Source: Histomonas meleagridis 2922-C6/04-290x (lineage: Eukaryota; Protista; Parabasalia). From it: DNA of 64,000 bases. Below, one piece after another: positions 3,719 to 50,389 of the stretch (the stretch's first letter is position 1; every line of letters begins with the position of its first letter). The position numbers were made by a program, and so were the translations under genes. The stretch lies in contig JAANOX010000035.1 of the NCBI GenBank assembly GCA_020184695.1, positions 124,001 to 188,000 of the forward strand, read 5' to 3'. The notes below the pieces were generated by a model. The model saw only the letters and a program-made list of their open reading frames with translations. It did not search any database and was not told where the DNA came from.

Positions 3719-4306
3719 GTGGGCGCAGAAAATCCATTTGTTTATAAAATTATCATTTGTGGAGAAACTGGCGTAGGCAAAACAGCTTTTATGAACTGCC
3801 TTCTTGAACGTTATACGGATTATATATCAATTGGTATTGATTTGATATTTAAAAACTTAGAAATTGAAGGTAAACATGTTAAAGCACATGTTTGGGACCA
3901 GAATGGTTCAGAGCATTGGTTTGTCTCTCCTGCATATTTTCGCAAAGCAATTGGAGCAATTATTCTCTATGATATTTCCACAAAATCCTCTTTTCAGAAT
4001 GTTTCACGGTGGCTAAGCAATGTCCGTGAACACTCGGATAACAGAGTTGTAATTATGCTTATTGGATCAAAATGTGATCTTGAAAAGATTCGAGAAGTTT
4101 CAACAGAAGAAGGAATTGAATTCAGCAAAAACGAGAACCTTATTTTTTACGAAACGTCATCTCGCGAAAATATTAATGTTCATGAAGCATTCGCAACATT
4201 GATCAAAAAAATTTTTCAAATTCTTAACAGTGATAACCAACCAAAACAAGTTGTGGAACAAGAACCAAAATCAAACGAAAGGAAACATCTGTGTATTTTT
4301 TCTTGA
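3719..4306 (+). CDS. Degenerate Rab11-like small GTPase, or pseudogene; start codon uncertain
   Basis: P-loop GETGVGKT, Rab-like AIGAIILYDIS...WLSNVREH...VIMLIGSKCDL...FYETSS, C-terminal CIFS. No ATG in any frame between 3661 and 3790; GTG at 3719 is the most plausible start. Confidence 0.7.
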   Translation: MGAENPFVYKIIICGETGVGKTAFMNCLLERYTDYISIGIDLIFKNLEIEGKHVKAHVWDQNGSEHWFVSPAYFRKAIGAIILYDISTKSSFQNVSRWLSNVREHSDNRVVIMLIGSKCDLEKIREVSTEEGIEFSKNENLIFYETSSRENINVHEAFATLIKKIFQILNSDNQPKQVVEQEPKSNERKHLCIFS

Positions 4307-5127
4307 TTTATTGAACAACGAAAAAATTAGCACGAAGACAAAAAACGAAAAAATACTCCAAGCATTTCACAAAGTAAATCTTCGATTTTTATTGCTCATT
4401 GTGTGTTTAATAATGTTGAAAATTAATGTGAAATTAACAAATGAATTTTTTATTGTTAAAACAGTGAGTTGTTTCTACAAGAGAAAACGAAATGATATTC
4501 AACACAAAACTTTTTTTTGAAAAATTATCTAAACAATATTTTGCTATTTTCTTTTGAATTGCTGAAGTGTCATAGCAAGTTTTGAAAACAGCATCTTTCT
4601 ATTCTTGTAAAGCGAATTGTAATATCCTATTGAACGGATATAATAATTATTTGTAACAATTAATCAACAATGGTGACAATTTATCACTAAATAACAACAC
4701 TAAACTTAACGATACATATGAAATGCAATCAATTAATGATTTATATGAATTATCAATTACTATTTGTATGAGTTTTGATTTATGTAATGAGTTCTTAATA
4801 AATGTTCAATACTTTCAATCGGACTTCATATGTGGGATCGATACTTTCTTGTTTTGAAACAAAAAAATCATAATTCATAAAAATTTCATAATTCATAAAA
4901 AAAATCATATTCATCATATTAATAATTATTTTTAAAATTAACTGTAATTTTGTCTACATACGTTTTTTTGAAAGCCTACTTTTAATTTTATGTAGAATCG
5001 CTTTGTACTAGAGCACATGAAATAAAATGAATGACTTAAAATAATAAAAAGTTATTTCCATTTGTTACAAATATAACAACTTCACATTTCGATTTTTATT
5101 ATTTGATAAAATAAGAGTTCTAAAATA

Positions 5128-8971: not shown

Positions 8972-9021
8972 TGTAAATAAGATCGCAGTTAGAGAAAATT
9001 GGTAAATTAAATTGAAAAATA

Positions 9022-9057
9022 TTTTTTTTGTTTTTTTTTTTTTTTTTTTTTTTTTTT
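9022..9057. repeat. Poly-T tract (T8-G-T27)
   Basis: Directly visible homopolymer between two genes. Confidence 0.95.
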
Positions 9058-9256
9058 GGATGTTTTAACTCATTAAGAAAAATTGCTATGGAATCAACAT
9101 AACTTTGATATGATATTCTGTTATAAAGAAGAAAAATTTCGTTGAAGTGTTTTTGTACAATTTAGTCAAAAGTTGAAAGTTTAAAAATGAAGTGATATGA
9201 AAGTTTTTGTATTATACGTTATGCATAAATGTGTAAAATATTGAAAAAATCTAAAA

Positions 9257-10156
9257 ATGGAGGAGAACATTCTCCATCCCTCAGCTACTGATGTAAAGAA
9301 TGCTTACAACTACAGGATGGATATTTTTACACGGAACTCAACAATTGCAGGTGTTACAGTTATTTTTATTATTATCATTAATTATATATCACAAAATTTA
9401 ACATTTTTCATAATAATAACGACATCAACAGTTGTATTTTATATTATAGAAAAACCAATTCATAATGTTTTACATGGAATCATCATTTCTGATCAATACT
9501 TTGATGAGGTTCCATTCAAATTATTTTATTTTTCTAGTGCAGCAGGACTATTTTGCATTCTCTCATTATTGCTTATGCTAACTATTGAATCAGATCAAAT
9601 TCTTGATAAATATTTATACTCATTTTTATTTTCACAATCCACTTTTCTTCTTTCTTCAACAATTAGATCGCTTCTTATTGTGCTCAAGATCATTTCTAGA
9701 GAATCTATAAGGCTTGGCTTTTTTGCAATTTTTCAAAGGATCTTCATTATTCTTCGCAGCATTGGTACTTTTTTTATTTGGGTATCATTTATTGATAAAA
9801 TATCTTTCCACCGTCTTTTCATGCTTATCTTTTATATATCTTCCAAGATCATATTCATTACTTATTTATTCATAGATTTAATTTCTACCATAAAATTGTA
9901 CAGACAAAACAAAAAGAGGAGGATAAAGATTTCCAGGCCTCTTAAAGATCATTTGTGCACCATCTGTCTGGAAACAGGTATTAAAGAGCCTGTTTTACTT
10001 GATTGCGGCCACATCTATTGCTATCACTGTCTGACTCACTGGCTGAGGATTAAGCAAACATGCCCTTTCTGCCAGCAACCTGCTTTTCCACCGCCAACAA
10101 TAATCGAGCTTTCAGATGGATTTGTCCCTTTGTCGATGTTTATTTTCACTATTTAA
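9257..10156 (+). CDS. Multi-pass membrane RING-finger E3 ligase (RNFT1-like)
   Basis: Several hydrophobic segments followed by a C3HC4 RING, CTIC...CGHIYCYHC...CPFC. The C-terminal LSDG..LSMFIF tail resembles RNFT1. Confidence 0.85.
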   Translation: MEENILHPSATDVKNAYNYRMDIFTRNSTIAGVTVIFIIIINYISQNLTFFIIITTSTVVFYIIEKPIHNVLHGIIISDQYFDEVPFKLFYFSSAAGLFCILSLLLMLTIESDQILDKYLYSFLFSQSTFLLSSTIRSLLIVLKIISRESIRLGFFAIFQRIFIILRSIGTFFIWVSFIDKISFHRLFMLIFYISSKIIFITYLFIDLISTIKLYRQNKKRRIKISRPLKDHLCTICLETGIKEPVLLDCGHIYCYHCLTHWLRIKQTCPFCQQPAFPPPTIIELSDGFVPLSMFIFTI

Positions 10157-35100: not shown

Positions 35101-38100
35101 ATTTAATTGATTTATTATTTGAAGGAGATTTAGAATTAATTGAATTTGTATCTGGTATTATACCATTTTCTAGAGCAGAAATATTTGGTACAGCATTATT
35201 AAATGCAGCAATTTATAAGAAATGTCAAGATAAATTATTAAGCAAAATGATTGAAATTGAATTACGTAATGTTGAAGAATCTACTAAAACTACATTATTT
35301 AGAGGTAATAGTGTACCTTCTAGAGTAGTAGGTCAATATCCTCGTATTGTAGGTACTAAATGGATGACTAATTTATTACGACCGATTTTTAATGGTGTAA
35401 TTAAATCATGTAATGAAGGTAAACGTTATACAATTGAACCTCGAAAACTTTCTCCAGGAGAAAACATTGAAGAAAATCGTTTGAATTTTAAGAATTTATT
35501 AAATGAAATTATCGAATCAGTCATTCAATCAAGTAAAGAATTACCTATAGGTATTATTGAAGAAATCCAATTAATATATAAAATGGTACATGAAAAATAT
35601 GGTGATTTTGTATATCAAATCTTAAATGGATTCTTCTTCTTACGTTTCTTATTACCTACATTTACAAATCCTAAATTTATAGGTTTACCAGAAACTTTAC
35701 CAGAACCTTCACGTACTGTCTTATTACAAACTTCATCATTTTTAATGGCAGCCACATTAAAAGGAGATTTAGGAGATAAAGGAGCAGATTATCAAATATT
35801 TAATGATATAGCAAATAAAGCACATGAATCATTCCTTAAAATGTTTAAACATATAATTGAAATTGAAATCACAGAACCTGATCAAAGTATTCCTGTTAAT
35901 GAAATTACTGCACGTAAAACTTTACATGCCGAAATTTGGCCAGTTCAACAACAATTAGCTAATGCAGCTAATGAAATGTCGGATGATTCTACATTAAAGA
36001 ATTCGATTGAAGGATTATTAAGTAAGATCCAATCAATGGGTCAACCTAAAGAAACTATTCGACCACGATGTTCTACAGTATCTAATGTACGAGATTCAGC
36101 TTCAAGTAAATTAAGTTCATTATTAAATATGAAATTTACAGATGATCAATTACAACAAGTTTCAGGATTTTTAGTTCATGAAACTCATAATGCTAATGAT
36201 GGTACATCTATAATATATTTATATACATCTAAAATTGGTATGATTACAGACCCTACAATTGTAGCTTATGTAGTTATGAAAGCATTAAATGAAGAATCAG
36301 GTTCTAAAGTTACAATGGTAATATTTTTAGATTCATTTGATGAAACTAAAATCCCTACAGCACAAATGATTAAAACGTTTAGTGAAATGAAGCCTGCATT
36401 AAAGATTACACGTTATATCTTCTTTGAACCTAATCAAGCATTTGCTAATTTTGTATCACGTAATCAAAACTTATTATTTGATCGACAATATCGATTTTAT
36501 TTCATAAAAGATTTAATGGAATTTAATGAAGCTTTAGGTCCACCATCAGAACATATCCCAATTTCTACATTAGAATCATTAACTAAACCTGATAGTGTTT
36601 ATACAGCTATAGTTAATGAAAAGAAGACTACAGTACAATTACATCAACGATCTATACAATTTGTAGGAGAAGTAGAACATTATAAAGCATTTGAATTTGC
36701 TACTAGAAAAGTTTTATTAACAAAAGATATTGATAAATATACACGACCACATGAATCTACATCTAAAGCAGGTTATCATGAATTCTTAATAGGTACAACA
36801 ATGAAACATTTATTCACATTCTTACAACCTGCTAATTCTACATTATATGAAGCGATATTAAATGTTACACAACGAAGTTTAACATTAGATAACTTAAAAG
36901 ATAAAGTTAAAATTGATTCATCTACATTACAATGGTTAATGTTAAATTTATCATTTATTAATATGATTAATGATCAAGTTTCAAATCATCTTAAGAAAGC
37001 AGCAATTGATTTAACACATGTAGTATATACATCATTTTCATTTAAACATAATGTTAAAGTATTTAAGGCACCTAAAGAAGCATTACCTGAAAACTTATTA
37101 GGTTATGTTAAATCATTAGCTTATGATGTAGCAGATAATAATCCAAAATCTTATTATGATTTCTTAACAGAATATTTTAATACTTATGAATATATTGAAG
37201 AACAAATTAAACCAATATCATTTATTTATTTAGAACATTGGATTAAACATTGGGTAAATGATATTCAATCACATCCAGAATTAATTGATAAATTCTTAGA
37301 TATTTATAAATCTTTATCAAAAGTTTCGATCATATTTTCTTATAGTATATGGAATCAATTTTCAGGTAATCAAAAAGCATTAGAATTATTATTTGAAAAC
37401 ATCTTTAATCGTAATGATGAAGCATTAATAGAAATTATTATATCATTAGCAGCACTTAATAAATCAGAAATTTCAAAGATTTGGTTAAATATGTTACAAA
37501 GATGCATTGAAAAAGTTGACGAGAAGATTATATTTGTAGCTAATATTATTTCATCATTATTAGTTAATCATTTATTTGCAGATGAATATATGAATGATTT
37601 AGTATTTTATATTTCTAATTTACGATTATTATATCAACCACAAGTATTAACTAATTTAACTACATTATTCTCTAATTTAATACATGAATTAATTATTAAA
37701 TCTAAACAAAGACATGATATAGATTATCCTAAAGTATGTGAAATGTTTTCATCTAGTGATATTTCACAAAGTAAACCTATTGCATTATTATTTAAAGAAT
37801 TAATATCTGATAAAGAATCATTATTTAATAAATGTATGAAAAATATCGATAGTACTGAAGATATATCACAAATTTGTAATTCATTAATATTTGCAGCAGC
37901 ATTTAGTCAAACAGAAAATGAAAAATTCATTAACAAAGCAATTAAAATTATTAAAGATTATAAAGATGAAACTATATTATCATTAGTATGTGAAGCATTA
38001 TCAATGATTACAGTTAATAATGAAGTAATTATTTCGAAGTTATATTTCATAGGTGTATCAATTTTATTATATCTAAAACATTCATCACCATTACATTTAA

Positions 38101-38699
38101 TTAGTTCGACAATTTCTAAACTTAAAAAGAAATCTAGAATTAATAAAATAATATCTTCAAAGGCATTAGATTTAATCGTTAAATATTCTGGTTTACCATT
38201 CCATAAAAAACCAATTTTCTCAACATTAATGTTATTTAGTGCTTATTCTGATTCTGTTGATTTGTTACCAGCATTAAAAGCTATAGTACAAAATGAAAAT
38301 GAAAGAGTGGCAATGGTATTCTCATTGTTGTTTAAGGATAAAATTGATAATATGGAAGAGCTGTCATTCGATTTCGGTGAAAGAAATGGTACTATGGCCG
38401 CCGCTTTGATATTGATGTTAAGGTTCGAACCAAAATCTGCTTTGAAAGAGTACTTACTAAGTTGGATAGAAAAGGACAAAGACGCGTTCAGCTGTTTCGA
38501 CTTGTGCCAATCGAAAAATGAAAGCGCTATGTTGGCTGGCATTAACAACCCGTACTTCGTCGCGAAGTTAATATGCGCTCAAACTGGAAGGAAAAACGCT
38601 TACAAGTTGGCTGCAATACTGAAGTCAGTCATCGAGGGCACTGAGTTCGGTATTGATGAGGATACACTTGATGAACTAATTAATGAAATATACAAGTAA
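32145..38699 (+). CDS. Neurofibromin/IRA-like RasGAP (2184 aa)
   Basis: Arginine finger LFRGNS and GFFFLRFLLP signature in the central third, long helical regions either side, and a possible Sec14-like segment after the GAP domain. Confidence 0.85.
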   Translation: MDPLEEIILHFNSMVEKHPATEASVMGSKEVTPENYLDNYFSKELFVLKHFSEFRIDSILPLFLTQTENILKNNNAKEWRFQTIFTLSLYYCLAEQCCKAFQTAKQGKSDTDATEESTNRFVINQANVIFGNEFSGYAKYLRKYFKIFLTTVGSISNELYRRFCYDLISAVSSKTFSVHLMPFKYLAGSVKRIDSLIDELLHVIQSIPKKKRTDFCEIIRDSIIFACKKDTPSFIQFLENNQNLTKASIFFSHIDDWNKNSKNVKVSFLSAQMALFILQPARFRGCQETFVDKLLKFNDLKGTTKDAAFTTILYGFKFLMLSHNNHALNEFMKPFYNMMLNYFIQGKHSILGNTLSSIDFAACAFYYDSTYFAEKIIPTFINGKNEGILSFSKIVCNILRQISQIYNMSQIEHLKIDDLQVFAPTILTIFEKAVSDQQRATYIIPLLKGFRSYPSFFRNLVFTQEQFLNYYTDIIKKHIDFPLQYPLLGFFDNSSFDITEHSDSLWKSVKSILDFLLKFYQTTAVYKPSQFSNGVPEIFLSAANFIHSFFQMPNARIIPEQNLKDIYSVVSDLESISLMFFASSRKEIRNIAKIILSNLVEIVDTNLPDLVFPVSVYQTLITEVRKIPILTTGHQCIRNSLRTLPTSSEGIKIAFDGLLSYFKALTNKINPNLAKPKANDQTLPLTIEKATDEWIGVSSVLYSLISPDEKTQLYLLTKELISDPGDLGQIIVAAIPTSIHVNHFMPFITFLSTWIFAIRNEQGSIEQSQQNLTIFRNIMKIFRGILIQKLWDSQMIITNTFSDISTQLVSFCDMVTGEEFRLSCAQCLIALNNLLKENDVYLSPNIRNSISKTLIGWLPSSGEPSKQYILAVQSALASMLDNLNLLDCIDSSLPTPAKEQASSLFMFYFVAIKSRLDAVNDQNVIELVPVLASLLKQNMDIGMEHCLSMGFAEKDKVRAVFMSALASVFKVPEAKIVEADKYQNVDLIDLLFEGDLELIEFVSGIIPFSRAEIFGTALLNAAIYKKCQDKLLSKMIEIELRNVEESTKTTLFRGNSVPSRVVGQYPRIVGTKWMTNLLRPIFNGVIKSCNEGKRYTIEPRKLSPGENIEENRLNFKNLLNEIIESVIQSSKELPIGIIEEIQLIYKMVHEKYGDFVYQILNGFFFLRFLLPTFTNPKFIGLPETLPEPSRTVLLQTSSFLMAATLKGDLGDKGADYQIFNDIANKAHESFLKMFKHIIEIEITEPDQSIPVNEITARKTLHAEIWPVQQQLANAANEMSDDSTLKNSIEGLLSKIQSMGQPKETIRPRCSTVSNVRDSASSKLSSLLNMKFTDDQLQQVSGFLVHETHNANDGTSIIYLYTSKIGMITDPTIVAYVVMKALNEESGSKVTMVIFLDSFDETKIPTAQMIKTFSEMKPALKITRYIFFEPNQAFANFVSRNQNLLFDRQYRFYFIKDLMEFNEALGPPSEHIPISTLESLTKPDSVYTAIVNEKKTTVQLHQRSIQFVGEVEHYKAFEFATRKVLLTKDIDKYTRPHESTSKAGYHEFLIGTTMKHLFTFLQPANSTLYEAILNVTQRSLTLDNLKDKVKIDSSTLQWLMLNLSFINMINDQVSNHLKKAAIDLTHVVYTSFSFKHNVKVFKAPKEALPENLLGYVKSLAYDVADNNPKSYYDFLTEYFNTYEYIEEQIKPISFIYLEHWIKHWVNDIQSHPELIDKFLDIYKSLSKVSIIFSYSIWNQFSGNQKALELLFENIFNRNDEALIEIIISLAALNKSEISKIWLNMLQRCIEKVDEKIIFVANIISSLLVNHLFADEYMNDLVFYISNLRLLYQPQVLTNLTTLFSNLIHELIIKSKQRHDIDYPKVCEMFSSSDISQSKPIALLFKELISDKESLFNKCMKNIDSTEDISQICNSLIFAAAFSQTENEKFINKAIKIIKDYKDETILSLVCEALSMITVNNEVIISKLYFIGVSILLYLKHSSPLHLISSTISKLKKKSRINKIISSKALDLIVKYSGLPFHKKPIFSTLMLFSAYSDSVDLLPALKAIVQNENERVAMVFSLLFKDKIDNMEELSFDFGERNGTMAAALILMLRFEPKSALKEYLLSWIEKDKDAFSCFDLCQSKNESAMLAGINNPYFVAKLICAQTGRKNAYKLAAILKSVIEGTEFGIDEDTLDELINEIYK

Positions 38700-38958
38700 A
38701 GTATTCTTGGAAACCCTTTTTTTTTTAGAAATAAATCCGATGAACAATGTGAAAATGGAATTTGGTGATGTGAAACTGATTATGTCAAAAAGTTGTATCG
38801 CAACGACAGAAAATTGAAAAGAGTTTTGTTAGAACCGTTTGATGATAAACCATTCAAAAATGTTACAGTTTCGATCGTTTGTTAAAAAATTAAAAGGAGC
38901 CAAAATGTACACACAAATTTCTATTGAATTAACAAGAAGTGCAACAAAAAATCTGAAA

Positions 38959-40569
38959 ATGATTGTGACTGCTGTTGTGTTCCAAACAATTTTTCTGATC
39001 AAAGAAATATGTTGTCTAAACAACCCACACATTAATTCAGTTTATGATGAAGTTTATGTGGATGATGATCAAGGACCTGTTGAATTAAAAATAAATGCAA
39101 TTATTGATAATTTGAATAGGCGTCTCCTGGCATATAATAATGTGTGGGAAGCTAACGATAGTATTGGTATTACTACTCTTCTTTCTAATGGCTCTATAGA
39201 TAATTTGTATATTAATGTTCCTTATTTCACACCTAATAATTCCTTAGGTTCCTTTGTTCCAAATGGCACTACAATGTACTTTCCACAAAGTGGGAATGAT
39301 CTGCATTTATTTGCTTATTATCCATTCGATCCTAATTCTTATTCTAATAATTGGGAAATCAAAAAGGACACAAGATTTCAAAATACTCATGAACTACAAA
39401 AGCAGCTGGACTTTTTGTATGCTCCCATGATTAATGCATCTAGAACATCTGAATCAATTGATTTTCTCTTTTCACATAAGATGACGAAAATCATTATTAC
39501 AATTCGACTTACTACTGGATTTACACCTGATGAAATATCCTCTGACTGGTCATTTTATATAAGTGGGTTTCAACATAATGGTACTTTTAATGCATTCACA
39601 GGAGAAGCTGCTGTTAATAATAACGATTCACTTCCAATTGATGATTGGAATATCACAGACAACTATTGTGATATAGATGAGACAGAAGGAACAAGAACAT
39701 ATACATTATTATTATTCCCACAAACACTTGAAAATGGAATGCGTTTATCTTGCGTTTATAAAGGAAAAGCATACAACGCAACATTTGCATCTGGATCACA
39801 GTACGCAGCCGGTATGTCGTACGCTTATTCTATTAGTGTGAAAGGTCCAAGCACATATACATTCACAGAATCAAACACGTTTACTAAATCGAATACATAT
39901 TCACAATCAAACACATATACTAAATCAGAAACTCTTGTTGAATTAAACACTTTTACATTGTCAAATGCATTTACTATATCGAATACATATTCTCAATCAA
40001 ATAAATACCCTAAGTCTGATAAATTTACTCAAAGTAATACATACACTAAATCGAATACGTTTATTCCTCCACACGTAACTTTCTCATGTTCGAAAGTTTT
40101 GAGTTATTCATTTGATATTACAGAAACAATATTTGCGAATACATTTATGTCAAATACGTATTTAATCTCATTTGTTAACTCATCATTTGTACATATTTTT
40201 ACAGAATTCATATTTTATCAATATAGTATTCTTCGATATACAACATATTATTCATTTTATTCTAATTTCTTTTTTATAATGAGTGAAAATAATATTAATG
40301 ATAATGAAGATGATAACAAAACTAATACTATCATTATCATTGTTGTTTGCGTTTTAGTTGGAATTATTATAATTTGTTTACTTGTTATTTTTTTGGTTCG
40401 ATATCGAAAACATAATCAAAATGAATCAAAAGATAATGAATCGAATAGTGTAAATCTTGACGAAATTGAGACACAAAATAATTTATCGACAGGAATTAAG
40501 ATGACGAATGTTGAAGAAGATCCATTTGCAAAAGATTTCAACGAAGATAATAATATTGATAACATATAA
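38959..40569 (+). CDS. Single-pass surface protein with a Bacteroidetes fimbrillin-like (Mfa/type V pilin) ectodomain
   Basis: Signal-like MIVTAVVFQTIFL; motifs WEANDSIGI, MYFP, FAYYPF, DFLYA, FSHKMTKI, LFPQ; (F/Y)TxSNT repeats; TM IIIIVVCVLVGIIIICLLVIFLV; tail EEDPFAKDF. Upstream in-frame ATGs exist (38839, 38905). Confidence 0.8.
   Translation: MIVTAVVFQTIFLIKEICCLNNPHINSVYDEVYVDDDQGPVELKINAIIDNLNRRLLAYNNVWEANDSIGITTLLSNGSIDNLYINVPYFTPNNSLGSFVPNGTTMYFPQSGNDLHLFAYYPFDPNSYSNNWEIKKDTRFQNTHELQKQLDFLYAPMINASRTSESIDFLFSHKMTKIIITIRLTTGFTPDEISSDWSFYISGFQHNGTFNAFTGEAAVNNNDSLPIDDWNITDNYCDIDETEGTRTYTLLLFPQTLENGMRLSCVYKGKAYNATFASGSQYAAGMSYAYSISVKGPSTYTFTESNTFTKSNTYSQSNTYTKSETLVELNTFTLSNAFTISNTYSQSNKYPKSDKFTQSNTYTKSNTFIPPHVTFSCSKVLSYSFDITETIFANTFMSNTYLISFVNSSFVHIFTEFIFYQYSILRYTTYYSFYSNFFFIMSENNINDNEDDNKTNTIIIIVVCVLVGIIIICLLVIFLVRYRKHNQNESKDNESNSVNLDEIETQNNLSTGIKMTNVEEDPFAKDFNEDNNIDNI
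39856..40070 (+). repeat. Degenerate 6-aa coding repeat (F/Y)-T/S-x-S-N-T stalk
   Basis: TYTFTESNTFTKSNTYSQSNTYTKSE...FTQSNTYTKSNTF. Confidence 0.8.
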
Positions 40570-40930
40570 TTTAATTTTTAAATTTCATCATTTTGTAAAT
40601 AATAATTATATAAATAAATTGTTTCTATTTCTATTAATATTTCATGTGATTTTTATTGTGTTGATAAATTTTTGGGTAATTATATCAACAGTTGCTATGC
40701 ATCATAAATAAAAACAATTAACAGTTAACCACATCAGAATCCCAAAATTAAGTTAATTGCATGTCAATAATTTTTTTTTTAAAAATGATTCATGACTCAT
40801 ATAAAAGTTTTCAATATATATTTTAAAAACATTAATACCAATTTTCCCACATATTACTGTATCTTGAACATTTTGTTATCATGAATTAAAATAAATTTAA
40901 GCACAAAAAAAATTCCAGAAAATGATTTGT

Positions 40931-41125
40931 TTAGATCAAATTGCATTTCTTTTTTTTATCTTCACTCTTCTTATTTAACTCACTTCTTTTTGTATTTTCA
41001 TTGATTTCCTCTTTTTTAGGTTCATCATTTTCGGACGTATGCCTTTCTTCTTTTTCAATATTTACTTCGCTTGATTGTTCTTCTTCATTTTGTTCCACGT
41101 TTAGTTTCCTTTCTTCTTCAGACAT
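40931..41125 (-). CDS. 64-aa acidic protein with polybasic CaaX terminus
   Basis: Glu-rich body ending KKKKCNLI*; ACAATG start context. Confidence 0.7.
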   Translation of the reverse strand: MSEEERKLNVEQNEEEQSSEVNIEKEERHTSENDEPKKEEINENTKRSELNKKSEDKKKKCNLI

Positions 41126-41678
41126 TGTATTGAAATAAACATCGATCGTAATTTTATTACCAATTTCACCAGATGATTAAATTTTATCAACTTTTCTTTT
41201 TAAATTTTATTTTTATCTTTTAAAGATTCTTAGTTTATTTAATTTATTTAAAATATCAATTCTGTACAAATTCTCATTTAAATTATTTTTTATAATATAA
41301 TAACATGTTTATTCCATTTGGAATATAATTTGCATACATACACGAAATATTTAAAATTTTCATTTAACCTATATCATGTAGCATCAATACATACAGATTA
41401 TCATAAACAGAATCCTATGATGAAACAACATCCAAAGAATAAATCATATTTGATTTATTAAACTTTAGGAATATAAACAATGCTTTTTTTTCCTATATAG
41501 GATAAATTTAACTACCATTTTAAAATTGATCAAATCTCTAATCTTTAAAGATTTTTTTGAAATAAATTATTATAAAAAATCAATTTTTTTTAGAAAATGA
41601 ATAAAAAAGAAAGTGATTCACATCTATATATGAAATATAATTTATTTTCTCTATTTTTGTATAATTTATTATAACTGT

Positions 41679-42608
41679 TCATTGAAGTAACGAAAGCAGA
41701 GATGGATCAACTTCTTCATCTTCGTCCTCATAGTCTTCTTCCTTTGCAGCCTCTTGGAATTCCTCGACAACTTCTCTCTGTATTTCTTCCTCTGTTTTCG
41801 GCGTTTCCATTATTTCTTCGCTCTTTTGCGAAATGATCTGTTTGAGGAGCGGCGGCGCGTTTGGACCCATTTGCTTCATGAGCTCTGCATGCCAAAGGCG
41901 CACAATTTCAAACGCTTTGTCTACGGCAATGTCTATCACATTTTGGCGCACTGGAAGACCTCCGTTTTTGTGAATCGCGCAAATCTCGCCTTGAGCATTT
42001 GCAAATATAGTAAGAAAACCTTTAAGAACAGAAGACTCTTTCAACGTGGGATCAACAAAAATGAGATGTGCTTCAAGAAAACCAAATGTAATAGCAATGG
42101 GGAGATGATGGATAACAATCGCGCGAAGACCACGAGGCCCTGGTAGCTTGGTTGATAGAAGGGAAGAAACAAGTGCAAGGTGGCATGCTTCAATTAGGCC
42201 ACCGTCATTGTTTTGAATGACAATATCTGATTTGAGATTCCATACTAATTCACCAATTTTAATAACAAGTGACTCTAAATCTAGGGCACGAGTGTGATGA
42301 AGAGCCGCTCTTAATTGGTATACTGTATCTGCTTGAAATGAATAATCTAATTTATGAGGAGAAGATATAGAAATTACGTGACGCCCTTCAGATGGTCTGT
42401 CATCGTCAGGCTTTTCTTGACTTATGGTGGTTGTACAAGTAACAAGTGTTTTGCCAAGATGAACAACTGCTGAATTAGTTGAAAATTCAATTCTAAAATA
42501 TCGCGTTTCTTGTGGTTGCCGCCCATCAACTCTTCTTTCTGTTTGCAGAATATTTTCCATTGCTCTCATTTCATTTGGTGTAATTTTGAAGGGCGGAGGG
42601 TTTTCCAT
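41679..42608 (-). CDS. RRP45: Exosome core subunit RRP45 (RNase PH fold)
   Basis: RVDGR, VHLGKTLVTC, LDLESLVI..GELVWNL, NNDGGLIEAC, HHLPIAITF. Confidence 0.85.
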   Translation of the reverse strand: MENPPPFKITPNEMRAMENILQTERRVDGRQPQETRYFRIEFSTNSAVVHLGKTLVTCTTTISQEKPDDDRPSEGRHVISISSPHKLDYSFQADTVYQLRAALHHTRALDLESLVIKIGELVWNLKSDIVIQNNDGGLIEACHLALVSSLLSTKLPGPRGLRAIVIHHLPIAITFGFLEAHLIFVDPTLKESSVLKGFLTIFANAQGEICAIHKNGGLPVRQNVIDIAVDKAFEIVRLWHAELMKQMGPNAPPLLKQIISQKSEEIMETPKTEEEIQREVVEEFQEAAKEEDYEDEDEEVDPSLLSLLQ

Positions 42609-43065
42609 TAAATTTTGGTTCGATGCTTAACGGTTTCTTTGGCTTCTGAATTGACTATCTGTGTTCAAATGACAATTACAAAGAATTTTATTTTCTCAGT
42701 TAATGATGATAAAATACAAAATGAAACATTGATTTTTTATTTTAAATTCGACAAGGATAGATTACAATCAATATAACAATTTTTGTAAATTTAATTAGTG
42801 TTTTGATTTATTCTATAAGGCACTTGGACCCACAACCTAAGCTTTTCTGGTTATGCGTGTTCATGGAAAGCGATAAAATAGCAACTCGAATTTTACATAT
42901 CTTGAGAGATATTTTTTGTACAAATACATACGAGTAATCTCTTATTTATTTATCCTTTTTATAAGGAATGTGTTAAATAAAATTACTAATATTTTTTGTA
43001 TATAGGGTCTATTTCTTGCTTCATAGCAAATAAATTTTTTTTAAATAAACGTTTTTTTAAAACCA

Positions 43066-43950
43066 ATGCTTGGCTTAGACATAGGAGCAACACTAACAAA
43101 GTTTTGCTTTATCGTAGATGGATCTGTAAAATATTATTTTGTTAAAACTTCATTTGAAGATATCCAAAACTTCTTAGAGAACAAAGGAACAGGAAAAAAA
43201 TTAAATGATTTTCTTCCAAATGGGATCCAAAAATGGACAATAACAGGTTGTGGTTCCCACAGACACAGAGAGTATTTTGAACATTTTCCTATAGTACCAA
43301 GTCAGATAAATGATTCACAAACAATTTTAAATGCAATTCCTAAATTATTTGCTGATCCAGAAATGTACGTTACTATGGGTGGCACCGGAAAAGCTGCGTT
43401 TGATGACAAAATCTTGGTAGCAATGATTGGGACAGGTGTTTCATTTTTTGTCATAACTAATCAAACCTCAATTAAACACTTTGGAGGCACCAGCATTGGT
43501 GGTGGGACATTTCTTGGGATGTCAAATCTACTATTCCAAAATACAGATTTTGAAAAGTTAATCTCAATGGCAAAAGAAGGAAATCCAGACAATTTAGACT
43601 TACTTATATCAGACATTGTAGGAGGGGATTACACAGGGTGCTTGAAATCCGATGTTGTAGCTTCATCCATGGCGAAATCTTTTTGGAGTAAAGAGCGACC
43701 ATCAGACATTGACACTTCCGCATCACTTATCAAGACCATTTCCATTGTAGTTGGCAGCCAAATTGCTTCTATTTGTAATTCACAAGGAATGTCCACATGC
43801 GTATTGATTGGCGGTTTTATGGACATAAACGACATCATTTCAAACAACGTAATTGCCTCAGTGAACTTGTTTCGTCCGAGTTTGACATGCGTAATTCCAA
43901 AGAATCATCTTTATTTCGGCGCTTTTGGTGCTGCCATTAATAATCAGTAA
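43066..43950 (+). CDS. Type II pantothenate kinase (fumble family)
   Basis: GLDIGATLTK, TGCG, IGTGVS, GGTSIGGGTFLG, DLLISDIVGGDY...VASS. Confidence 0.9.
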   Translation: MLGLDIGATLTKFCFIVDGSVKYYFVKTSFEDIQNFLENKGTGKKLNDFLPNGIQKWTITGCGSHRHREYFEHFPIVPSQINDSQTILNAIPKLFADPEMYVTMGGTGKAAFDDKILVAMIGTGVSFFVITNQTSIKHFGGTSIGGGTFLGMSNLLFQNTDFEKLISMAKEGNPDNLDLLISDIVGGDYTGCLKSDVVASSMAKSFWSKERPSDIDTSASLIKTISIVVGSQIASICNSQGMSTCVLIGGFMDINDIISNNVIASVNLFRPSLTCVIPKNHLYFGAFGAAINNQ

Positions 43951-43991
43951 AATTTTACTACTATCCTTAAATCTATTGATATTTACTAAAG

Positions 43992-45635
43992 TCAGTCGAG
44001 TTTTAACGTAAAGAGTGAGAATCCACGTGGCGACAAATGGCTAAACAAGTCGAACATTCCGACTAAATAATGTTCTTGTTTCACCTCGACGATGCGCGCG
44101 AAGTAAGTGAGCCTCTCCATGAGAAGGAAGCTCTCGAACACGTGCCCAAACAATTCTCTGGCGACTGCGTGCGCCATCATTTTCCAATCTTCATTCTGAA
44201 TTTCGGCAATTTTCCAATGCACTTTCGATGCATCTGTTGGAGTACCAAAATGAGTCGCAAGACGTAAGACGTAGTCCTCAAAGTTCTCATCTTTGTTTTG
44301 TTTGAGCTTTTTAATTGTTTGTCGGGAAGGAATAAAACATTCAATTATCGAGCGATGGAGAAATTGCTCGAGAATAGATTTACGAGTTTCGAATGTGACG
44401 TTATACTCGTAGAGGGCATAGTTCAGCAGGTTATGTCTTTTGGTTTCATTTTGGCCAAATAAAAGATCGCATATTGGTTGATTCTCAGGAAGCAATGGAA
44501 GTCTTGAATGAGAAAGGTGCTGATAGCAGCAAGGAACAGAAATAGCGCCTCGTGGTTGAGGTGAGTTTAATGCAATTTCATGAGTAACAATGCTTAAATC
44601 ACCGCATGCATGAAGACCGACAGTAATATATTCAATAGGTTTGAGGTCAACATCGTTGGCTGCTAAAATTTCAACTGCAAGTTCGCCTTGGATTACGCGT
44701 GGCTTCTTGCTTTGCTCAGAAAAACGAAGTTGTTCTATCGGCACCGCGTTGGGGGCATCCTGAATTTCGTTTTTTTTGGATTTACCCTTTTTACCCTTCT
44801 GGAAATCTTTAACGGTCGCTGACCACTGTTCATATTTCATTGAATTTACATAAATTGCTTCGACATTTGTTTGAGTTGTCATGTACCCTATACACATGTT
44901 CATGAGATCAAAGGAATTTGGATCAACGCGCTTTTGAGATATAAGACATCCAATTCTGTTTTGAAGGTGACATGCATGTGATAAGCTTGCTTCAATTGTT
45001 AAAGTACGCATTCGCATTTGGCTTGACATGAATACAGAAAAGTACCCTTTTCCAGCGCCAACATCTACAAAGGAGATATTTGAACGTTTTAGTGGCGTTT
45101 TTTCGGTGATTTGTAAATGTGATAATTCTTTTGAAAGTGAATTGTGATAGGCTTCACCATGAAAAATAGATTCATCAAGTGAAAAACAATGATTAAGTAA
45201 AACATCAATTGCATAAGTGAGATAAATGACCTCTTGAGATTTATCAAATCCAGACATGCCTTGTAGAGATGGATATTTCATAACGTCAATTGCCTCTCTC
45301 TTTTCAGTTTCCCGTGGAAGAAATAGTGAAGTTGATTCTTGGAAGAATGAAGAAAGTGATGGTGATGAAATAATACTAAAATCATTTTCATTGAAAATTT
45401 TGTCATGAAAAATTTTATCAGTGAATATCCTTTGGAGATCATTTTTCCACTCAGGGTCAAAAACACCACCAGTGTTTTCTGAATAAATATCCAAAGCAAA
45501 TGGACCAAAAAGTTGAATCCATTTCTGAAAATAATCATGAAACTTTTGGAAAATCTGTTCAGTTATGTTTAAAAACTCTGTTAAAGTGCCAACAAATAGT
45601 TCTCCTCCTGGAAGAGGAGTAATGACTTTGGACAT
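43992..45635 (-). CDS. METTL25/RRNAD1-like SAM-dependent methyltransferase
   Basis: VDVGAGKGY, VGLHACGDLS, VPCCYQ, SPRG. The start may lie at ATG 45635 (aaaaATG) or further upstream (up to 45704). Confidence 0.85.
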   Translation of the reverse strand: MSKVITPLPGGELFVGTLTEFLNITEQIFQKFHDYFQKWIQLFGPFALDIYSENTGGVFDPEWKNDLQRIFTDKIFHDKIFNENDFSIISSPSLSSFFQESTSLFLPRETEKREAIDVMKYPSLQGMSGFDKSQEVIYLTYAIDVLLNHCFSLDESIFHGEAYHNSLSKELSHLQITEKTPLKRSNISFVDVGAGKGYFSVFMSSQMRMRTLTIEASLSHACHLQNRIGCLISQKRVDPNSFDLMNMCIGYMTTQTNVEAIYVNSMKYEQWSATVKDFQKGKKGKSKKNEIQDAPNAVPIEQLRFSEQSKKPRVIQGELAVEILAANDVDLKPIEYITVGLHACGDLSIVTHEIALNSPQPRGAISVPCCYQHLSHSRLPLLPENQPICDLLFGQNETKRHNLLNYALYEYNVTFETRKSILEQFLHRSIIECFIPSRQTIKKLKQNKDENFEDYVLRLATHFGTPTDASKVHWKIAEIQNEDWKMMAHAVARELFGHVFESFLLMERLTYFARIVEVKQEHYLVGMFDLFSHLSPRGFSLFTLKLD

Positions 45636-45800
45636 TTTTGGGGTGCACCTCATTCCAGCTGCAAAAATGTTTTGGTAATAAAATATACTTAATTTTTTAA
45701 TCATAGACCAACATCAAACAGCAACCAGATTTAAACTCTATTTTTTGTTTATCATTAAATTCAATCTGTTCTAAGTTTAAGTTATATTGAATTATTTTGA

Positions 45801-46607
45801 TTACTCTTGCTGTTGCATGCATAAAATGTATTTCATTTTTCTTATCTCTTTGTCTTGCATTGCAATTTCTGTTTCTAATTCTTTGATTCTTGCATTGTAA
45901 CATTTTTGATTTTCATTTAGACTATAACACATGTTTTCACACATTGACTGAAATCTCTTTAGTTCTGCTTTTGCCTTTTTGTATTTTTCTTGGTATTTTG
46001 CTGCTTGCTCTTTATATTCATTTAGTTCATTCATTAGTTGTATAAAACGATCCGTTTTATTCTCTTCATCATTTCTTTGGAATTCATTTTTCATCATATC
46101 ATTAATACAAGGATTTAAAAGAAATACATTTGAAAACAATTTAAATTCAATTATTCTAATATCGACTAACTTGATGGCAAGATCTACCTCTGATCTATGG
46201 CCATGAGCTTTCAAATAAAGGAGTGCATTTTTACAATCTTTAATTGCAGGATATTTAAATGATCTAATATTAGTAAAATCAAAAGTTATGTTATGCAACT
46301 CATTTGGAAATAGATTACTAAGCTGTTCACCTTTTAGTAGAATCTGATCACCAATTGTTGAAAAGCTGATTATTTTTTCGATTGCTTTTTCCAAATCATT
46401 TACGATTTTTATCCGATCAATATTTTTCATCTCATCATAATATAATCTTCTTGTCATGGTTGTAAGAAATTGTACATTATTTTCAGTAATTTCATTTCGA
46501 ATTGAAAGTTCATCAATTAAACTATCAATTTTGATCAACACCTCTGTAAACCTTGTTGAAGGGTTGCTAGAATATTTGTTGTAATTTTTATTTTCTACAT
46601 TTTTCAT
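45801..46607 (-). CDS. Hypothetical protein with C-terminal coiled coil
   Basis: 268-aa ORF with heptad-rich C-terminus. Confidence 0.7.
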   Translation of the reverse strand: MKNVENKNYNKYSSNPSTRFTEVLIKIDSLIDELSIRNEITENNVQFLTTMTRRLYYDEMKNIDRIKIVNDLEKAIEKIISFSTIGDQILLKGEQLSNLFPNELHNITFDFTNIRSFKYPAIKDCKNALLYLKAHGHRSEVDLAIKLVDIRIIEFKLFSNVFLLNPCINDMMKNEFQRNDEENKTDRFIQLMNELNEYKEQAAKYQEKYKKAKAELKRFQSMCENMCYSLNENQKCYNARIKELETEIAMQDKEIRKMKYILCMQQQE

Positions 46608-46843
46608 TTCAATGATATTTTTTTGCTGACAAAAAAATGAGATAAAAAATCATTAACAACGAAATTCTTAATTACTAATCTTTTGGTATGTTTCTCACTC
46701 GTGTTAAAATTTAATTATAATATTTGATAACAAATTATTTATTTTTTTACCAAACATTTTCAAGGAAAACTTTGAATATTGAGTTATTAGCTCCAAAAAA
46801 TCTATTCAAACTGTTAACTTGAAATTGATGTTTACATAAATAA

Positions 46844-48235
46844 TCAATACAGTACCTTCATTTGGGATGATCTCCACAATCTTCCATAATTATCGAAGTT
46901 AGAAGCAATACCCTTTATCAAAACACTCATTTCTTTCGATTCTAGTGGCACGTCCTGATAATCTTCTTGAATGAAATTGATCAAAAGAAGGATATCTTTT
47001 TCCAATTCTTCATTATTTAATTGTCTTGTTGGTTTAAATGTTAAGTATGGGTGATTTAACAAATCACTAATTTTTGGTCTTAACTTTGGATTTCTTTGTA
47101 AGCAACTTTTCATTGTTTGTAACAAATCAGGAAAATCAAAACGATCGATTATTTCTGGAAACTCGATTTCGTATGCGTCATCAACAATTGCTTGAATCTT
47201 TTGGAGCCAATCTGTTTGTGGAAAAGGAGGTCTTCCATAAACAAGTTGATATAAGATACAACCTAAAGACCACACATCACCAGAAGTACCAACTTTGAAC
47301 TTTTGACTTGTTTCATTAAGTTTAAGTGACTCTGGTGGCATATAATTAAGTGTTCCAACTTGATTTGATCGTTCGATATTTGTTGTGTCATTTTCAACTG
47401 CTATACGTTTTGCTATACCGAAGTCGATGAGCTTTAAGGTCCCTTTTACAAAGAGAAAGTTAGCCGGCTTTAAATCTCCATGAACAACATTTGCATGATG
47501 AACAACTTGTACAGCTTCAAGCATTTGTTGCCACATTAAACGAAGGAAATTGGGATCAATTTCTTCTTTTTCAGCAAGATTCTTTTCAATAAGAGATCGA
47601 AGATCAATATCTCCAAGTTCAAGAACAATTGAAATAACACCTCTTGTGTTGTCAACTTCACTGTCTATCATCGAAATAATGCGGTCAGAGTGGTATTCTT
47701 TGAGTTTTTTGAGTAAAGCGATTTCATTAACAAAGCTTTCAAGTGCTTGTGGATTAATATTATTAATGTTAACACGTTTAAGAGCATAAATATTGGAGTC
47801 AGGAGCCATAACTTTATAAACTTTCGAACTTCCACCTTTACCAATTTTTTTAAGGACAAGATATGGAGTATTATTAACTGTAAAAATGTTATATTGTTCA
47901 AAGAAACCATTGGAATGATGTTGTTCAGGAGTATTTTGATTTGAAAATGGTTGAGTTGTTGAGGATGAGCTTGAAATTGATAAAGAATGATTAGTTGATT
48001 GATTAACTGGAACTCTTTTTGGTGCCTGGTCAAAAATCCCACCTAATCTCTTTAAGTTATTTGTGGCTGGCGTTGGTTGCTTTTTAACGTAATCTTGAAT
48101 ATTACTTGAACCAATTTTATTGGGTGTTCTAATCTTGCTTTGCGGTTTTTTCATTTTCGATCCTAAGTCCATTTTGTTCCGTTGAGCATTTAGTTTTGAA
48201 CTTGAAATTTGTTTCAAGGCGCTTCTTGTGCTCAT
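46844..48235 (-). CDS. MPS1: Mps1/TTK dual-specificity kinase
   Basis: IGKGGSSKVYKV, NEIALL, FLRLMWQQMLEAV, HGDLKPANFLFVKGTLKLIDFGIA, QVGTLNYMPPE, DVWSLGCILYQLVYGRPPF. Confidence 0.93.
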   Translation of the reverse strand: MSTRSALKQISSSKLNAQRNKMDLGSKMKKPQSKIRTPNKIGSSNIQDYVKKQPTPATNNLKRLGGIFDQAPKRVPVNQSTNHSLSISSSSSTTQPFSNQNTPEQHHSNGFFEQYNIFTVNNTPYLVLKKIGKGGSSKVYKVMAPDSNIYALKRVNINNINPQALESFVNEIALLKKLKEYHSDRIISMIDSEVDNTRGVISIVLELGDIDLRSLIEKNLAEKEEIDPNFLRLMWQQMLEAVQVVHHANVVHGDLKPANFLFVKGTLKLIDFGIAKRIAVENDTTNIERSNQVGTLNYMPPESLKLNETSQKFKVGTSGDVWSLGCILYQLVYGRPPFPQTDWLQKIQAIVDDAYEIEFPEIIDRFDFPDLLQTMKSCLQRNPKLRPKISDLLNHPYLTFKPTRQLNNEELEKDILLLINFIQEDYQDVPLESKEMSVLIKGIASNFDNYGRLWRSSQMKVLY

Positions 48236-48466
48236 GTCGATTAAAATTTAAACGCACGTCTTTTTGGTTCAATTTAAATGTACGTTTAAAAAAATATTTT
48301 GACTAACTTTGTTTCAACTTCATTAGGAACAAACAAACAACAAAAAGGCTTCTAATAGTTTTGACATCATGAATTTTGCCCAAGTGCTACCTCAAATATA
48401 CAACAAGAGTGTTAAAATATAGTGATAAAATTAATTAAGTATTATATCATGAAAGAGTTCCTTTTA

Positions 48467-49039
48467 CTAGCATTGACATGATTGTTTTTTATTCTCTACA
48501 ACAGGCACGTTTTTTTGGGCATCAGGGTTTAATGGTGAAGTAGAAATTTTTGAAACAATATATTCAAAAAGCTTGTAAATTCCAATACCAGATACAGCTG
48601 AAGTTTCAAAATATGTCAGCTTTAGTTCAGTTGCTTTTTCATCAATATCTTTTGTGTCATAAACTCGAGTTGGTAAGTCAACCTTATTACAACATAAAAC
48701 AACCAGGCTTATATCTGATGATGTTTCATTAATGAAATTGTACCAGTATCCTACTGATTCTAAAGAATCTTGTTTTGAAACATCCATGACTATTACTGCG
48801 GCATTTGCTCCATGAAGATAAAGCGGAACAACTGATCTGTATGCATCTTGGCCTGCTGTATCCATTACAGTTAGAGAATAAGTAATACCATTAAATTCGA
48901 TTTTTTTGTTCTTTGAAGCGGCACCAATTGTTGGTGTTATTTCTTCATTCTCTCCGAAATAGTAGTTTATAATTGATGTTTTCCCAACTGCAGCATCTCC
49001 AAGAAGAACAACTTTAATGTTTTCTTCCTGCTCCAACAT
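48467..49039 (-). CDS. Rab-family small GTPase
   Basis: GDAAVGKT, TIG, DTAGQD, NKVD, ETSA, C-terminal CQC. Confidence 0.93.
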   Translation of the reverse strand: MLEQEENIKVVLLGDAAVGKTSIINYYFGENEEITPTIGAASKNKKIEFNGITYSLTVMDTAGQDAYRSVVPLYLHGANAAVIVMDVSKQDSLESVGYWYNFINETSSDISLVVLCCNKVDLPTRVYDTKDIDEKATELKLTYFETSAVSGIGIYKLFEYIVSKISTSPLNPDAQKNVPVVENKKQSCQC

Positions 49040-49534
49040 TTTATAAACGATGATATGTAACCGGTAGTTTTTTTGAAAAATTGGCAGTGACGATAAATTT
49101 TGCTTTAAAAATGACTTTTTCTATAGATCGTAAATCTTCCTAAAAGTCAATTGATTAATGTGACAGATAATTGAAAACAACTTTTTTCTTGCGGTGGAGA
49201 AATTGCTCTTTATAACAATTTAGAACACTTGAGCTTGAGTTATTGATAAAATATTACTGAAATAAAATTCCATTAATAATTTTTAAAAAATTGTATCGTG
49301 ATGAAGAATAAACCTAAATTAATTAGCTAAATATGCAATATACTTTGGTTTATTTAAAGCTGATAAATTAAAATAAATGGCAAAACATTAATAAGAAGTT
49401 AAACCAATTGATGAAATACATTACAATGAAGTTGATCATTTTTTTATGTGAAACTACGCAGTCAAAAATGCATTAGTATTACGTAATATTTACTTATGAT
49501 CATTTATTTATAGTTATAAGAAATTTTTATAAAA

Positions 49535-50389
49535 TTATGCATTAAGGAATGGCAAGATCTTATCGATTGTTTCTTTTTGCTTTTCCAAGAATAACAAATG
49601 TCCGCTCTCTTCAGATATAGCTATTTCAGAGTTTGGAACCCATTTTGACCACCAATCCTTTGAATCATCAATATCCATAAGGTTATCATGATCGCCAAGA
49701 ATTACCATCATTCGTTTGTTGACATTTGCAAGAACAGTAATTGTTTGGTCGATTTCATTTTGGTCATAAGATGCAATCGATTTCGAAATTGCACATGTGT
49801 TAGACCAACTTGTTTGGAATTGTTTCATACAAACATTAGCAACAGACTTTACAATTTCCTCACAGCTTGTCGGAGAGTAAAATTGTTGTGAAATTTGTTC
49901 AGGAATAGTTAATGAATATGTAAACTTCAAAACAAGAGGACCTAAAAACCGTGTCCCAAGCGTAAATTTTTGAAGAGGAGATGGAGAGTTGCTTGAAAAT
50001 AAGGGTGAAATAAAAATCATCTTATCAATTAATTCTGGGGATTTTGAAACTAATCCTGCTGCAACAACTGCACCATAAGAAAAGCCAATTAAGTGACATT
50101 TTTTAACTTGTAGGTAGCTAAGTAGGGATAAAACTTCTGTGATATATGAAGATAATCCAAAATTTCCATCATTTGGGTGTTCACTAAATCCCCTTCCCCA
50201 ATAGTCAATAACCAAAACAGAAAATCCATTATTCATTAATTCATTTGCTAATGGACAATAAAGATTTGAAGGCATTGTAAATCCTGGTAACAAGCAAACA
50301 ACTGGTGCGTTTTCTCTTCTAAAATCACGGTAATGTATTTTCCCATTTTGAGAAGGGAGGAAAAATTGCGGTGTATCAACAAATTCCAT
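49535..50389 (-). CDS. Alpha/beta hydrolase
   Basis: LLPGF oxyanion region, DYWGRGFS, GFSYG nucleophile elbow, GDHD acid, SGH histidine. Confidence 0.9.
   Translation of the reverse strand: MEFVDTPQFFLPSQNGKIHYRDFRRENAPVVCLLPGFTMPSNLYCPLANELMNNGFSVLVIDYWGRGFSEHPNDGNFGLSSYITEVLSLLSYLQVKKCHLIGFSYGAVVAAGLVSKSPELIDKMIFISPLFSSNSPSPLQKFTLGTRFLGPLVLKFTYSLTIPEQISQQFYSPTSCEEIVKSVANVCMKQFQTSWSNTCAISKSIASYDQNEIDQTITVLANVNKRMMVILGDHDNLMDIDDSKDWWSKWVPNSEIAISEESGHLLFLEKQKETIDKILPFLNA

Follow-up and report, generated by a model that had tools for sequence, protein, structure and literature searches.

The locus and its product

The window considered here is a 64,000-nucleotide stretch of the genome of the parabasalid Histomonas meleagridis 2922-C6/04-290x (assembly GCA_020184695.1, contig JAANOX010000035.1, positions 124,001–188,000, forward strand), and all window coordinates below refer to it. 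Its plus strand carries, at 38959–40569 and within an enclosing open reading frame (ORF) that spans 38839–40569, a gene for a protein of 536 residues (counted from the ATG at 38959) in which the domain of a type V pilin, almost certainly acquired from Bacteroidales by lateral transfer, is followed by a repetitive stalk, a single transmembrane (TM) helix and an acidic tail that recur in many other Histomonas proteins. A reading of this locus made from its letters without database searches (hereafter, the sequence-only reading) had described such a graft, and the ordered motifs, N-x-S/T sequons, stalk, TM helix and acidic tail that it listed were all found in place on inspection of the sequence. 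The motifs, by residue, are PVELKINAIIDNLNRR (40–55), WEANDSIGI (63–71), YFP (106–108), FAYYPF (118–123), DFLYA (151–155), FLFSHKMTKI (169–178) and LFPQ (252–255), and the ectodomain sequons number nine, as claimed (N66, N77, N93, N102, N159, N207, N222, N231 and N273). A regular-expression count of (F/Y)(T/S)xS(N/D/E)(T/K/A) hexapeptides gives ten in residues 299–368, one strongly hydrophobic helix lies at residues ~458–480 (hydropathy up to 3.8), and the tail, with 13 Asp and Glu against six Lys and Arg, contains EEDPFAKDF at residues 519–527. The gene can be divided as follows.

38739–38958 (+): possible 5′ leader with a 25-codon upstream ORF (uORF) and three in-frame ATGs, from one RNA contig
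38959–39018 (+): probable translation start with a hydrophobic N-terminal signal (residues 1 to ~20), mean Kyte-Doolittle hydropathy 1.9–2.0 over residues 1–20
39073–39132 (+): pilin anchor strand PVELKINAII and Arg loop NRR-LLA, both kept, from the alignment column of R55 and the AlphaFold2 model
39073–39846 (+): Mfa_like_1 two-domain β-sandwich ectodomain (residues 39–296) with nine sequons, from Pfam, AlphaFold2 and Foldseek
39847–39870 (+): fusion junction KGPSTYTF and start of the stalk, from alignments A2 and A5 and the unmatched end of the profile
39853–40062 (+): stalk of about ten (F/Y)TxSNT hexapeptides (residues 299–368), from the regular expression; disordered, with a predicted local distance difference test score (pLDDT) below 50
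40075–40284 (+): conserved aromatic-rich juxtamembrane module (residues 373–442), from alignment A6, with an invariant Tyr, and AlphaFold2
40330–40398 (+): single TM helix (residues ~458–480), from hydropathy and an AlphaFold2 helix of pLDDT 87–96
40399–40569 (+): acidic cytoplasmic tail (residues 481–536) and stop codon, with EEDPFAKDF at 40513–40539, from the sequence and alignment A6

Other in-frame ATGs occur at 38842, 38860 and 38905; one RNA contig reaches back to 38739 and another starts at 39000. Since the N-termini of two homologues, P0020 and P0001, align at the Met encoded at 38959, this ATG is the best candidate, and translation probably starts there. Within the longer RNA contig, 5′ of the gene, lies the 25-codon uORF (38740–38817), which is in frame with the main ORF; this region may represent an unusually long transcript leader or read-through of the contig from the upstream gene.

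Identity, origin and integrity of the gene

The profile search proposed with the sequence-only reading matched the family Mfa_like_1 (PF13149) far beyond chance: residues 58–300 align with profile positions 3–234 of 246 at an E-value of 5e-40 (138.5 bits against a cut-off of 27), and two Bacteroides proteins in the PDB are matched by sequence as well (3ufi chain A, 4.7e-19; 4k4k chain A, 3.4e-14). The combined MAFFT alignment (A4) misplaced bacterial pilins on the stalk and was discarded, and the domain and the scaffold were folded separately. The AlphaFold2 model of residues 25–305, computed from a 79-sequence alignment, has a mean pLDDT of 89.1 and a predicted TM-score (pTM) of 0.86. When compared with the PDB by Foldseek, as had likewise been proposed, it matched the fold of solved type V pilins, namely 3ufi (E-value 1e-16, TM-score 0.71), 4k4k (TM-score 0.71/0.78), 3t2l, 4eps and 3sy6 and the Porphyromonas pilins Mfa4 (5dhm), Mfa2 and Mfa3. 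Its neighbours in the AlphaFold DB clusters and the ESM Atlas are fimbrillins or proteins without a name, those in the Atlas carrying PF13149 without exception. Of the 79-member family alignment, the four invariant and 19 near-invariant residues are retained in full. The claimed Mfa-like fimbrillin domain is thus confirmed by profile, sequence and fold.

Among the best 150 matches, nearly all other carriers of the domain are bacterial and most of these show a lipobox pattern. A scan of species-representative genomes (bacterial-only alignment A3) located 80 loci, all in Bacteroidales except for a few contigs in bins of other phyla. The latter belong to metagenome-assembled genomes (MAGs) labelled Eggerthellaceae, Clostridium, Acutalibacteraceae, Senegalimassilia, Agathobaculum and Spirochaetaceae (loci L029, L041, L047, L050, L057, L063 and L064), and are likeliest to be mis-binned public contigs. 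Closest among bacterial proteins are P0021 and an orthologue with which it shares 85% identity, from a MAG with the title Candidatus Bacteroides intestinavium; each is 35–36% identical to the window domain, with E-values of ~5e-49. The species name and isolate code of this MAG hint at an origin in the chicken caecum. The MAG gene (L017:3947–4885) sits in a typical type V pilus operon, in which an Mfa2-type anchor gene is followed by three Mfa_like_1 genes. With P0021 alone as the query, no loci were found in genome contigs.

The only other known eukaryote-type proteins are the two homologues mentioned above, both derived from metagenome assemblies; a scan of metagenome contigs with the three eukaryote-type domains returned two distant bacterial lipoproteins and no further eukaryote copies. 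P0020 (559 residues, contig GC 31%) has the full architecture, including an EEDPFAADF tail, and P0001 ends inside the stalk. On the contig of P0001 (L006, 1150–1697; GC 38%) the stalk frame is left after two repeats, and this copy could be a pseudogene, could come from a different species or could be a graph chimera formed at the repeat. In a maximum-likelihood tree the window protein, P0020 and P0001 form one group (ultrafast bootstrap 99, Shimodaira–Hasegawa-like approximate likelihood ratio test 97), which is nested among Bacteroidales sequences once more distant bacterial members are included. When either metagenome copy was left out, the remaining one still had the window protein as its nearest sequence, with a starred value of 95 for P0001 and one below starred support for P0020. 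The three copies have diverged to 33–37% identity and share the same switch from pilin to stalk, ...S(V/L)-x2-3-(S/E)T(Y/N)TFT(E/Q)SNTFT. Because they form a single clade nested in Bacteroidales and have this junction in common, the sequences point to a single transfer from a Bacteroidales donor and a single fusion, with divergence thereafter. The pilin domain has a GC content of 33%, close to that of the whole gene (29%) and of the window (31%), versus 51% for the gene of the nearest bacterial homologue. The position of the eukaryote clade within Bacteroidales diversity, the eukaryotic context and the host-like GC content bear out the lateral acquisition proposed in the sequence-only reading, and we regard the identity and origin of the gene as close to certain.

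Over the part used for the tree, one bacterial Mfa_like_1 domain is 100% identical among loci L030–L037 and L059 (match at ~4001–4987 in most), which come from genomes or MAGs labelled Phocaeicola vulgatus, Bacteroides xylanisolvens, Segatella copri and Muribaculaceae; L034 (Parabacteroides) is slightly different. Such identity fits the cargo of a conjugative element, and mobility of this kind may have eased transfer out of the phylum.

A fusion of this sort might also arise in assembly, as a chimera or by the joining of contaminating bacterial DNA to a protist gene, and the DNA contigs give this explanation some footing: they break within the repeated stalk (39882–39927) and tail (40508–40551), and the assembly may itself have been built from these DNA runs, which would then not be independent. 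De Bruijn contigs from two DNA runs nevertheless cover 38300–39916 without mismatch, from the end of the upstream RasGAP gene through the whole pilin domain into 63 nucleotides of the stalk, and the next DNA contigs cover 39892–40536. At these breaks DNA word depth rises, from ~515 to 4,400 at the start of the stalk and to 8,000–16,000 at the tail motif, with ~8 times the single-copy level at 39815–39915 and 15–30 times in the tail (40399–40569); identical 31-mers are therefore common to many paralogues. The RNA runs belong to a separate, later study (2023), and from them a contig of 1,802 nucleotides covers 38739–40540 without mismatch, with a second contig spanning 39000–40541. Since an RNA contig extends over all modules, a single transcript carries them, and cultured parasites express the gene. 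A separate poly(A) tract, at 38713, ends the upstream gene, and on the other side, in the intergenic region 40623–41300, RNA depth falls to zero or close to it. The sequence-only reading had named in advance a failure of reads to span the domain–stalk junction as a sign of a chimera, and this junction is bridged by both DNA and RNA contigs. Together with the GC content of the domain, which is 33% and not the ~50% of its bacterial counterparts, the recurrence of the junction in the two metagenome sequences and the missing lipobox, this continuity effectively refutes a chimeric origin.

The neighbouring ORFs encode a 2184-residue RasGAP, an RNase PH exosome subunit, a pantothenate kinase (PanK), and Myb, Kelch and EF-hand proteins. 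The region 37066–49950 is identical over 12,885 nucleotides to contig WSYJ01000186.1 of a second H. meleagridis assembly (GCA_020186115.1), the record of which leaves the interval from the RasGAP to the RNase PH gene (window 38700–41678, L089:1635–4613) without a called gene; the pilin-fusion ORF is for this reason unannotated. Its 536 codons are intact in an AT-rich genome and identical in both sequenced strains and in RNA. None of six alternative N-terminal versions of the protein had an exact match among 15 billion proteins, and 1.8 billion cluster representatives, searched exhaustively with HMMER, did not yield the fusion protein itself. No annotated Histomonas protein with PF13149 emerged from a word-indexed profile search that took the eukaryote copies as queries, was non-exhaustive and missed P0020. 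Genes of the scaffold family located elsewhere may be likewise uncalled in GCA_020186115.1. In another part of the window (11328–15750, minus strand), proteins resembling CCT-epsilon and proteasome Rpn1 each share a 90%-identity cluster with a paralogue encoded on a different H. meleagridis contig (461,849 bp); the consecutive accession numbers of these paralogues suggest a segmental duplication.

Changes relative to bacterial pilins and the shared scaffold

The comparison with bacterial pilins shows what the domain has kept and what it has lost. In the alignment, the C-terminus of the bacterial relatives consists of a segment with the consensus KTGLxVSxCTIxxW and about ten further residues. 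This segment is absent from the window protein and from P0020; in the window protein SYAYSISVKGP leads straight into the stalk, and the Pfam profile finds no match for its last 12 positions (235–246). HMMER aligned the first stalk repeat to the start of the corresponding strand of 3ufi, and the model has a pLDDT below 50 there. According to cryo-electron microscopy of the Mfa pilus, polymerisation requires donor strands at the C-terminus, of which tip pilins are devoid, and in type V pilus assembly the donor strand enters the groove of the preceding subunit (PMC13655056). As the donor-strand segment is missing, the window protein would not be expected to polymerise as a donor subunit. The proposed graft of a pilin domain is accordingly modified: the domain was acquired and its fold kept, but it was not grafted whole, the C-terminal donor-strand segment being gone.

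At the N-terminal end, the anchor strand (model residues 20–25) is followed by a loop of low pLDDT (model residues 30–34, residues 54–58 of the protein), and R55 falls in an alignment column that holds Arg in at least 90% of the 79 family members. In bacterial pilins the Arg loop is the cleavage site (PMC13655056), and the low model confidence would be as expected for an exposed site. The equivalent in P0020 is RKLLA, and the Arg is missing in P0001. Upstream of this region there is no lipobox context; the window protein begins MIVTAVVFQ..., and most bacterial Mfa-domain matches either fit the lipobox pattern or are fragments. On the sequences compared, the bacterial lipoprotein signal and lipobox are replaced by a plain hydrophobic N-terminus. 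Among the traits of an assembly-competent subunit, the protein has the anchor strand at the N-terminus and, after it, the loop with the conserved Arg, as seen in the alignment and the AlphaFold2 model, and lacks the lipobox Cys, the C-terminal donor strand and a location in a pilus operon.

Sequons are the features gained. Nine in the ectodomain compare with 4.5 ± 1.9 in shuffled sequences (P ~0.02), the three eukaryote copies have 7–10 per domain versus 2–4 in bacteria, and those at N207 and N273 recur in every eukaryote copy but in none of the bacterial domains. By these counts, candidate glycosylation sites were gained in the eukaryote copies.

Residues 296–536 match many Histomonas proteins with unrelated heads, annotated as BspA-type leucine-rich repeat (LRR), DUF5057 or bacterial Ig-like proteins (HMMER, residues 280–533, E-values 1e-29 to 1e-13). 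Alignment A6 of 30 scaffold proteins, which are 26–44% identical to the window module, shows a common layout: TxSNT repeats that vary in number, then the aromatic juxtamembrane block, a single TM helix and a D-x-[F/W] tail. Two kinds of tail can be told apart, one with ...EEDPFAxDFxE... and one with ...(E/D)DQW(L/I/M) at the C-terminus, and the two line up as D-x-[F/W]; in trichomonad surface proteins, DxF counts among the endocytic motifs related to AP-2 (PMC6701047). Near-identical tail cassettes are common to many paralogues. The sequence-only reading had taken the scaffold as typical of trichomonads; this analysis traced it to Histomonas and to similar metagenome sequences alone, and not to trichomonads at large.

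The AlphaFold2 model of the scaffold is of low confidence (pLDDT 60, pTM 0.27), so that only the TM helix and the core of a hairpin are taken as indicative. The repeats are disordered, residues 373–442 are modelled as a β-hairpin (strands at model residues 78–111 and 114–147, central pLDDT 67–89), and the TM helix occupies model residues 158–194 (pLDDT 87–96). The juxtamembrane block FIFYQYS...YYSFYSNFF, a hairpin of 34 + 34 residues, is unlikely to be stable alone, and in the model it hints that scaffold proteins might oligomerise.

Proposed function and place among captured adhesins

With the Bacteroidales Mfa_like_1 pilins (BACOVA_04980, the 3ufi structure; BACUNI_00621, the 4k4k structure; the L017 gene), the window protein shares family, fold, anchor strand with Arg loop, and invariant core. 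Unlike them it has no lipobox, donor-strand segment or pilus operon, being the product of a monocistronic eukaryotic gene, and it possesses extra sequons along with the stalk, TM helix and cytoplasmic tail. A terminal donor strand is likewise missing from Mfa4 and Mfa5 of P. gingivalis and from bacterial Mfa_like_1 lipoproteins with extra C-terminal domains, in which, as here, the C-terminus runs on into other modules; these bacterial lipoproteins are, however, placed at the distal end of a bacterial pilus, whereas the window protein has its own C-terminal TM helix for a eukaryotic membrane.

The overall plan is a familiar one in parabasalids. In trichomonad BspA and Pmp proteins the bacterial C-terminal parts have been exchanged for a TM helix and tails with endocytic motifs, DxF included (PMC6701047), and the BspA-like and Pmp-like proteins of parabasalids (Handrich et al. 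2019, PMC6701047; for H. meleagridis BspA, PMC8529796) show the same combination of a bacterial adhesin with a TM helix and endocytic tail, as well as Bacteroidales-type donors and gene-family expansion. The bacterial module differs, being a type V pilin fold here and LRR or Pmp repeats there. Within Histomonas, P0022 (DUF5057, KAH0794904.1) and P0023 (LRR, KAH0786114.1) have the same stalk, juxtamembrane block, TM helix and EEDPFAxDF tail at 38–44% identity; their heads are unrelated to the pilin domain, and both are annotated while the pilin fusion is not. Type V pili have been described as unique to the class Bacteroidia (PMC13655056). A full-text literature search found no report of a type V pilin domain in any eukaryote, and the domain is not mentioned in the Histomonas genome paper (PMC8529796), the surfaceome paper, the paper on the Trichomonas lateral gene transfer (LGT) toolkit or the 2013 LGT survey. 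Parabasalid membrane scaffolds that bear bacterial adhesin domains were already known; what is new in this gene is the type of fold, that of a pilin, together with the loss of the donor strand and the lack of an annotation.

On the basis of these data, we propose that the protein is a non-polymerising surface adhesin or receptor, a reading that as a whole we consider about 70% probable; its functional component, the role in adhesion or reception as predicted from sequence, is likely, with somewhat less assurance. On this account, a Bacteroidales pilin domain was acquired by lateral transfer and, in one ancestral event, lost its lipoprotein signal and C-terminal donor strands and became fused to the lineage-specific cassette of stalk, juxtamembrane block, TM helix and tail. 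The protein would enter the endoplasmic reticulum (ER), become N-glycosylated and adopt a type I topology with the pilin head on the cell surface. That head would be a closed, non-polymerising monomer that binds ligands of the host mucosa or of bacteria, and the D-x-[F/W] tail would couple the protein to AP-2-type endocytic cycling, as has been proposed for trichomonad BspA and Pmp. What this retains of the sequence-only reading is the pilin identity, the fold and the lateral origin; the graft of a whole domain and a trichomonad-wide scaffold are given up. Its glycosylated adhesin, which might bind mucus or host cells or dock onto bacterial pili, is carried over as a conjecture, for which the enrichment of sequons and the two sequons conserved in eukaryote copies alone give indirect support.

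Several points weigh against this proposal. Surface location, glycosylation, ligand binding and endocytosis are predictions only, and we know of no ligand for Mfa_like_1 pilins even in bacteria. The signal peptide was judged by hydropathy alone, and the upstream ATGs and long RNA leader make the N-terminus uncertain. The RNA evidence consists of assembled contigs rather than raw reads, so that expression level and transcript ends are approximate, and the long eukaryote branches make any exact sister group or donor lineage uncertain. In T. vaginalis, moreover, tagged BspA and Pmp proteins are found mostly in the ER and Golgi and not at the surface (PMC6701047).

Other functions can be envisaged for the same architecture. 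The protein might serve as a surface coat, decoy or mimic, that is, a glycosylated variable antigen without a specific ligand that shields the membrane or imitates antigens of commensal Bacteroidales. Such a role would suit a scaffold that bears heads as unrelated as LRR, DUF5057 and Ig-like domains, tail and stalk 31-mers that are common to many paralogues, and eukaryote copies that diverge fast (33–37% identity, long branches) and gain sequons; the retention of every invariant and near-invariant core residue speaks against it, although upkeep of the fold could by itself account for this, and we consider the idea unlikely. If, on the other hand, nothing were selected at all and the gene were a transcribed but decaying by-product of neutral domain shuffling, then its omission from the genome annotation, an RNA word depth below that of the upstream gene and the abrupt stop of P0001 within the stalk would be unsurprising. 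That is very improbable for an intact ORF of 536 codons, identical in both sequenced strains and in RNA, which keeps the family core residues and shares two eukaryote-specific sequons and the junction with copies only 33–37% identical.

A more radical alternative makes the protein an acceptor-only pilin, anchored in the membrane, that captures the donor strands of nascent or broken Bacteroidales pili and thereby tethers and internalises bacteria; an Arg-specific protease in the caecum would cut the loop, or a part of the groove that is already empty would take the donor strand of a stalk pilin. With its donor strand absent but the anchor strand and the Arg typical of the family still present, the protein resembles a bacterial tip pilin in layout. 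Tip pilins have no donor strands, and assembly fills the groove of the preceding subunit (PMC13655056). The tail motif is compatible with uptake, and the MAG of the closest bacterial relative may stem from the chicken caecum. The idea is nonetheless wholly inferential, the Arg is not conserved in P0001, heavy N-glycosylation could block the groove, and the specificity of the groove for foreign donor strands is open to question. Moreover, the gene is transcribed in laboratory cultures monoxenic with E. coli, a bacterium that to our knowledge has no type V pili. We therefore see this alternative as a long shot, which, if true, would amount to a cross-kingdom hijack of bacterial pilus polymerisation by a eukaryote.

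As a non-polymerising adhesin or receptor, the window protein would represent a third bacterial adhesin fold captured by a parabasalid on its own membrane scaffold, after BspA-type LRRs and Pmp. The steps of the graft can be followed, from the replacement of the lipobox by a eukaryotic signal through the removal of the polymerisation strand at a conserved junction to the gain of sequons. Proteome and surfaceome studies have probably missed the protein because they search annotated proteins, among which this gene is not represented. H. meleagridis is an economically important parasite of the poultry gut, and the pilin fusion offers a testable handle on its contact with the caecal mucosa or with the surrounding bacteria.

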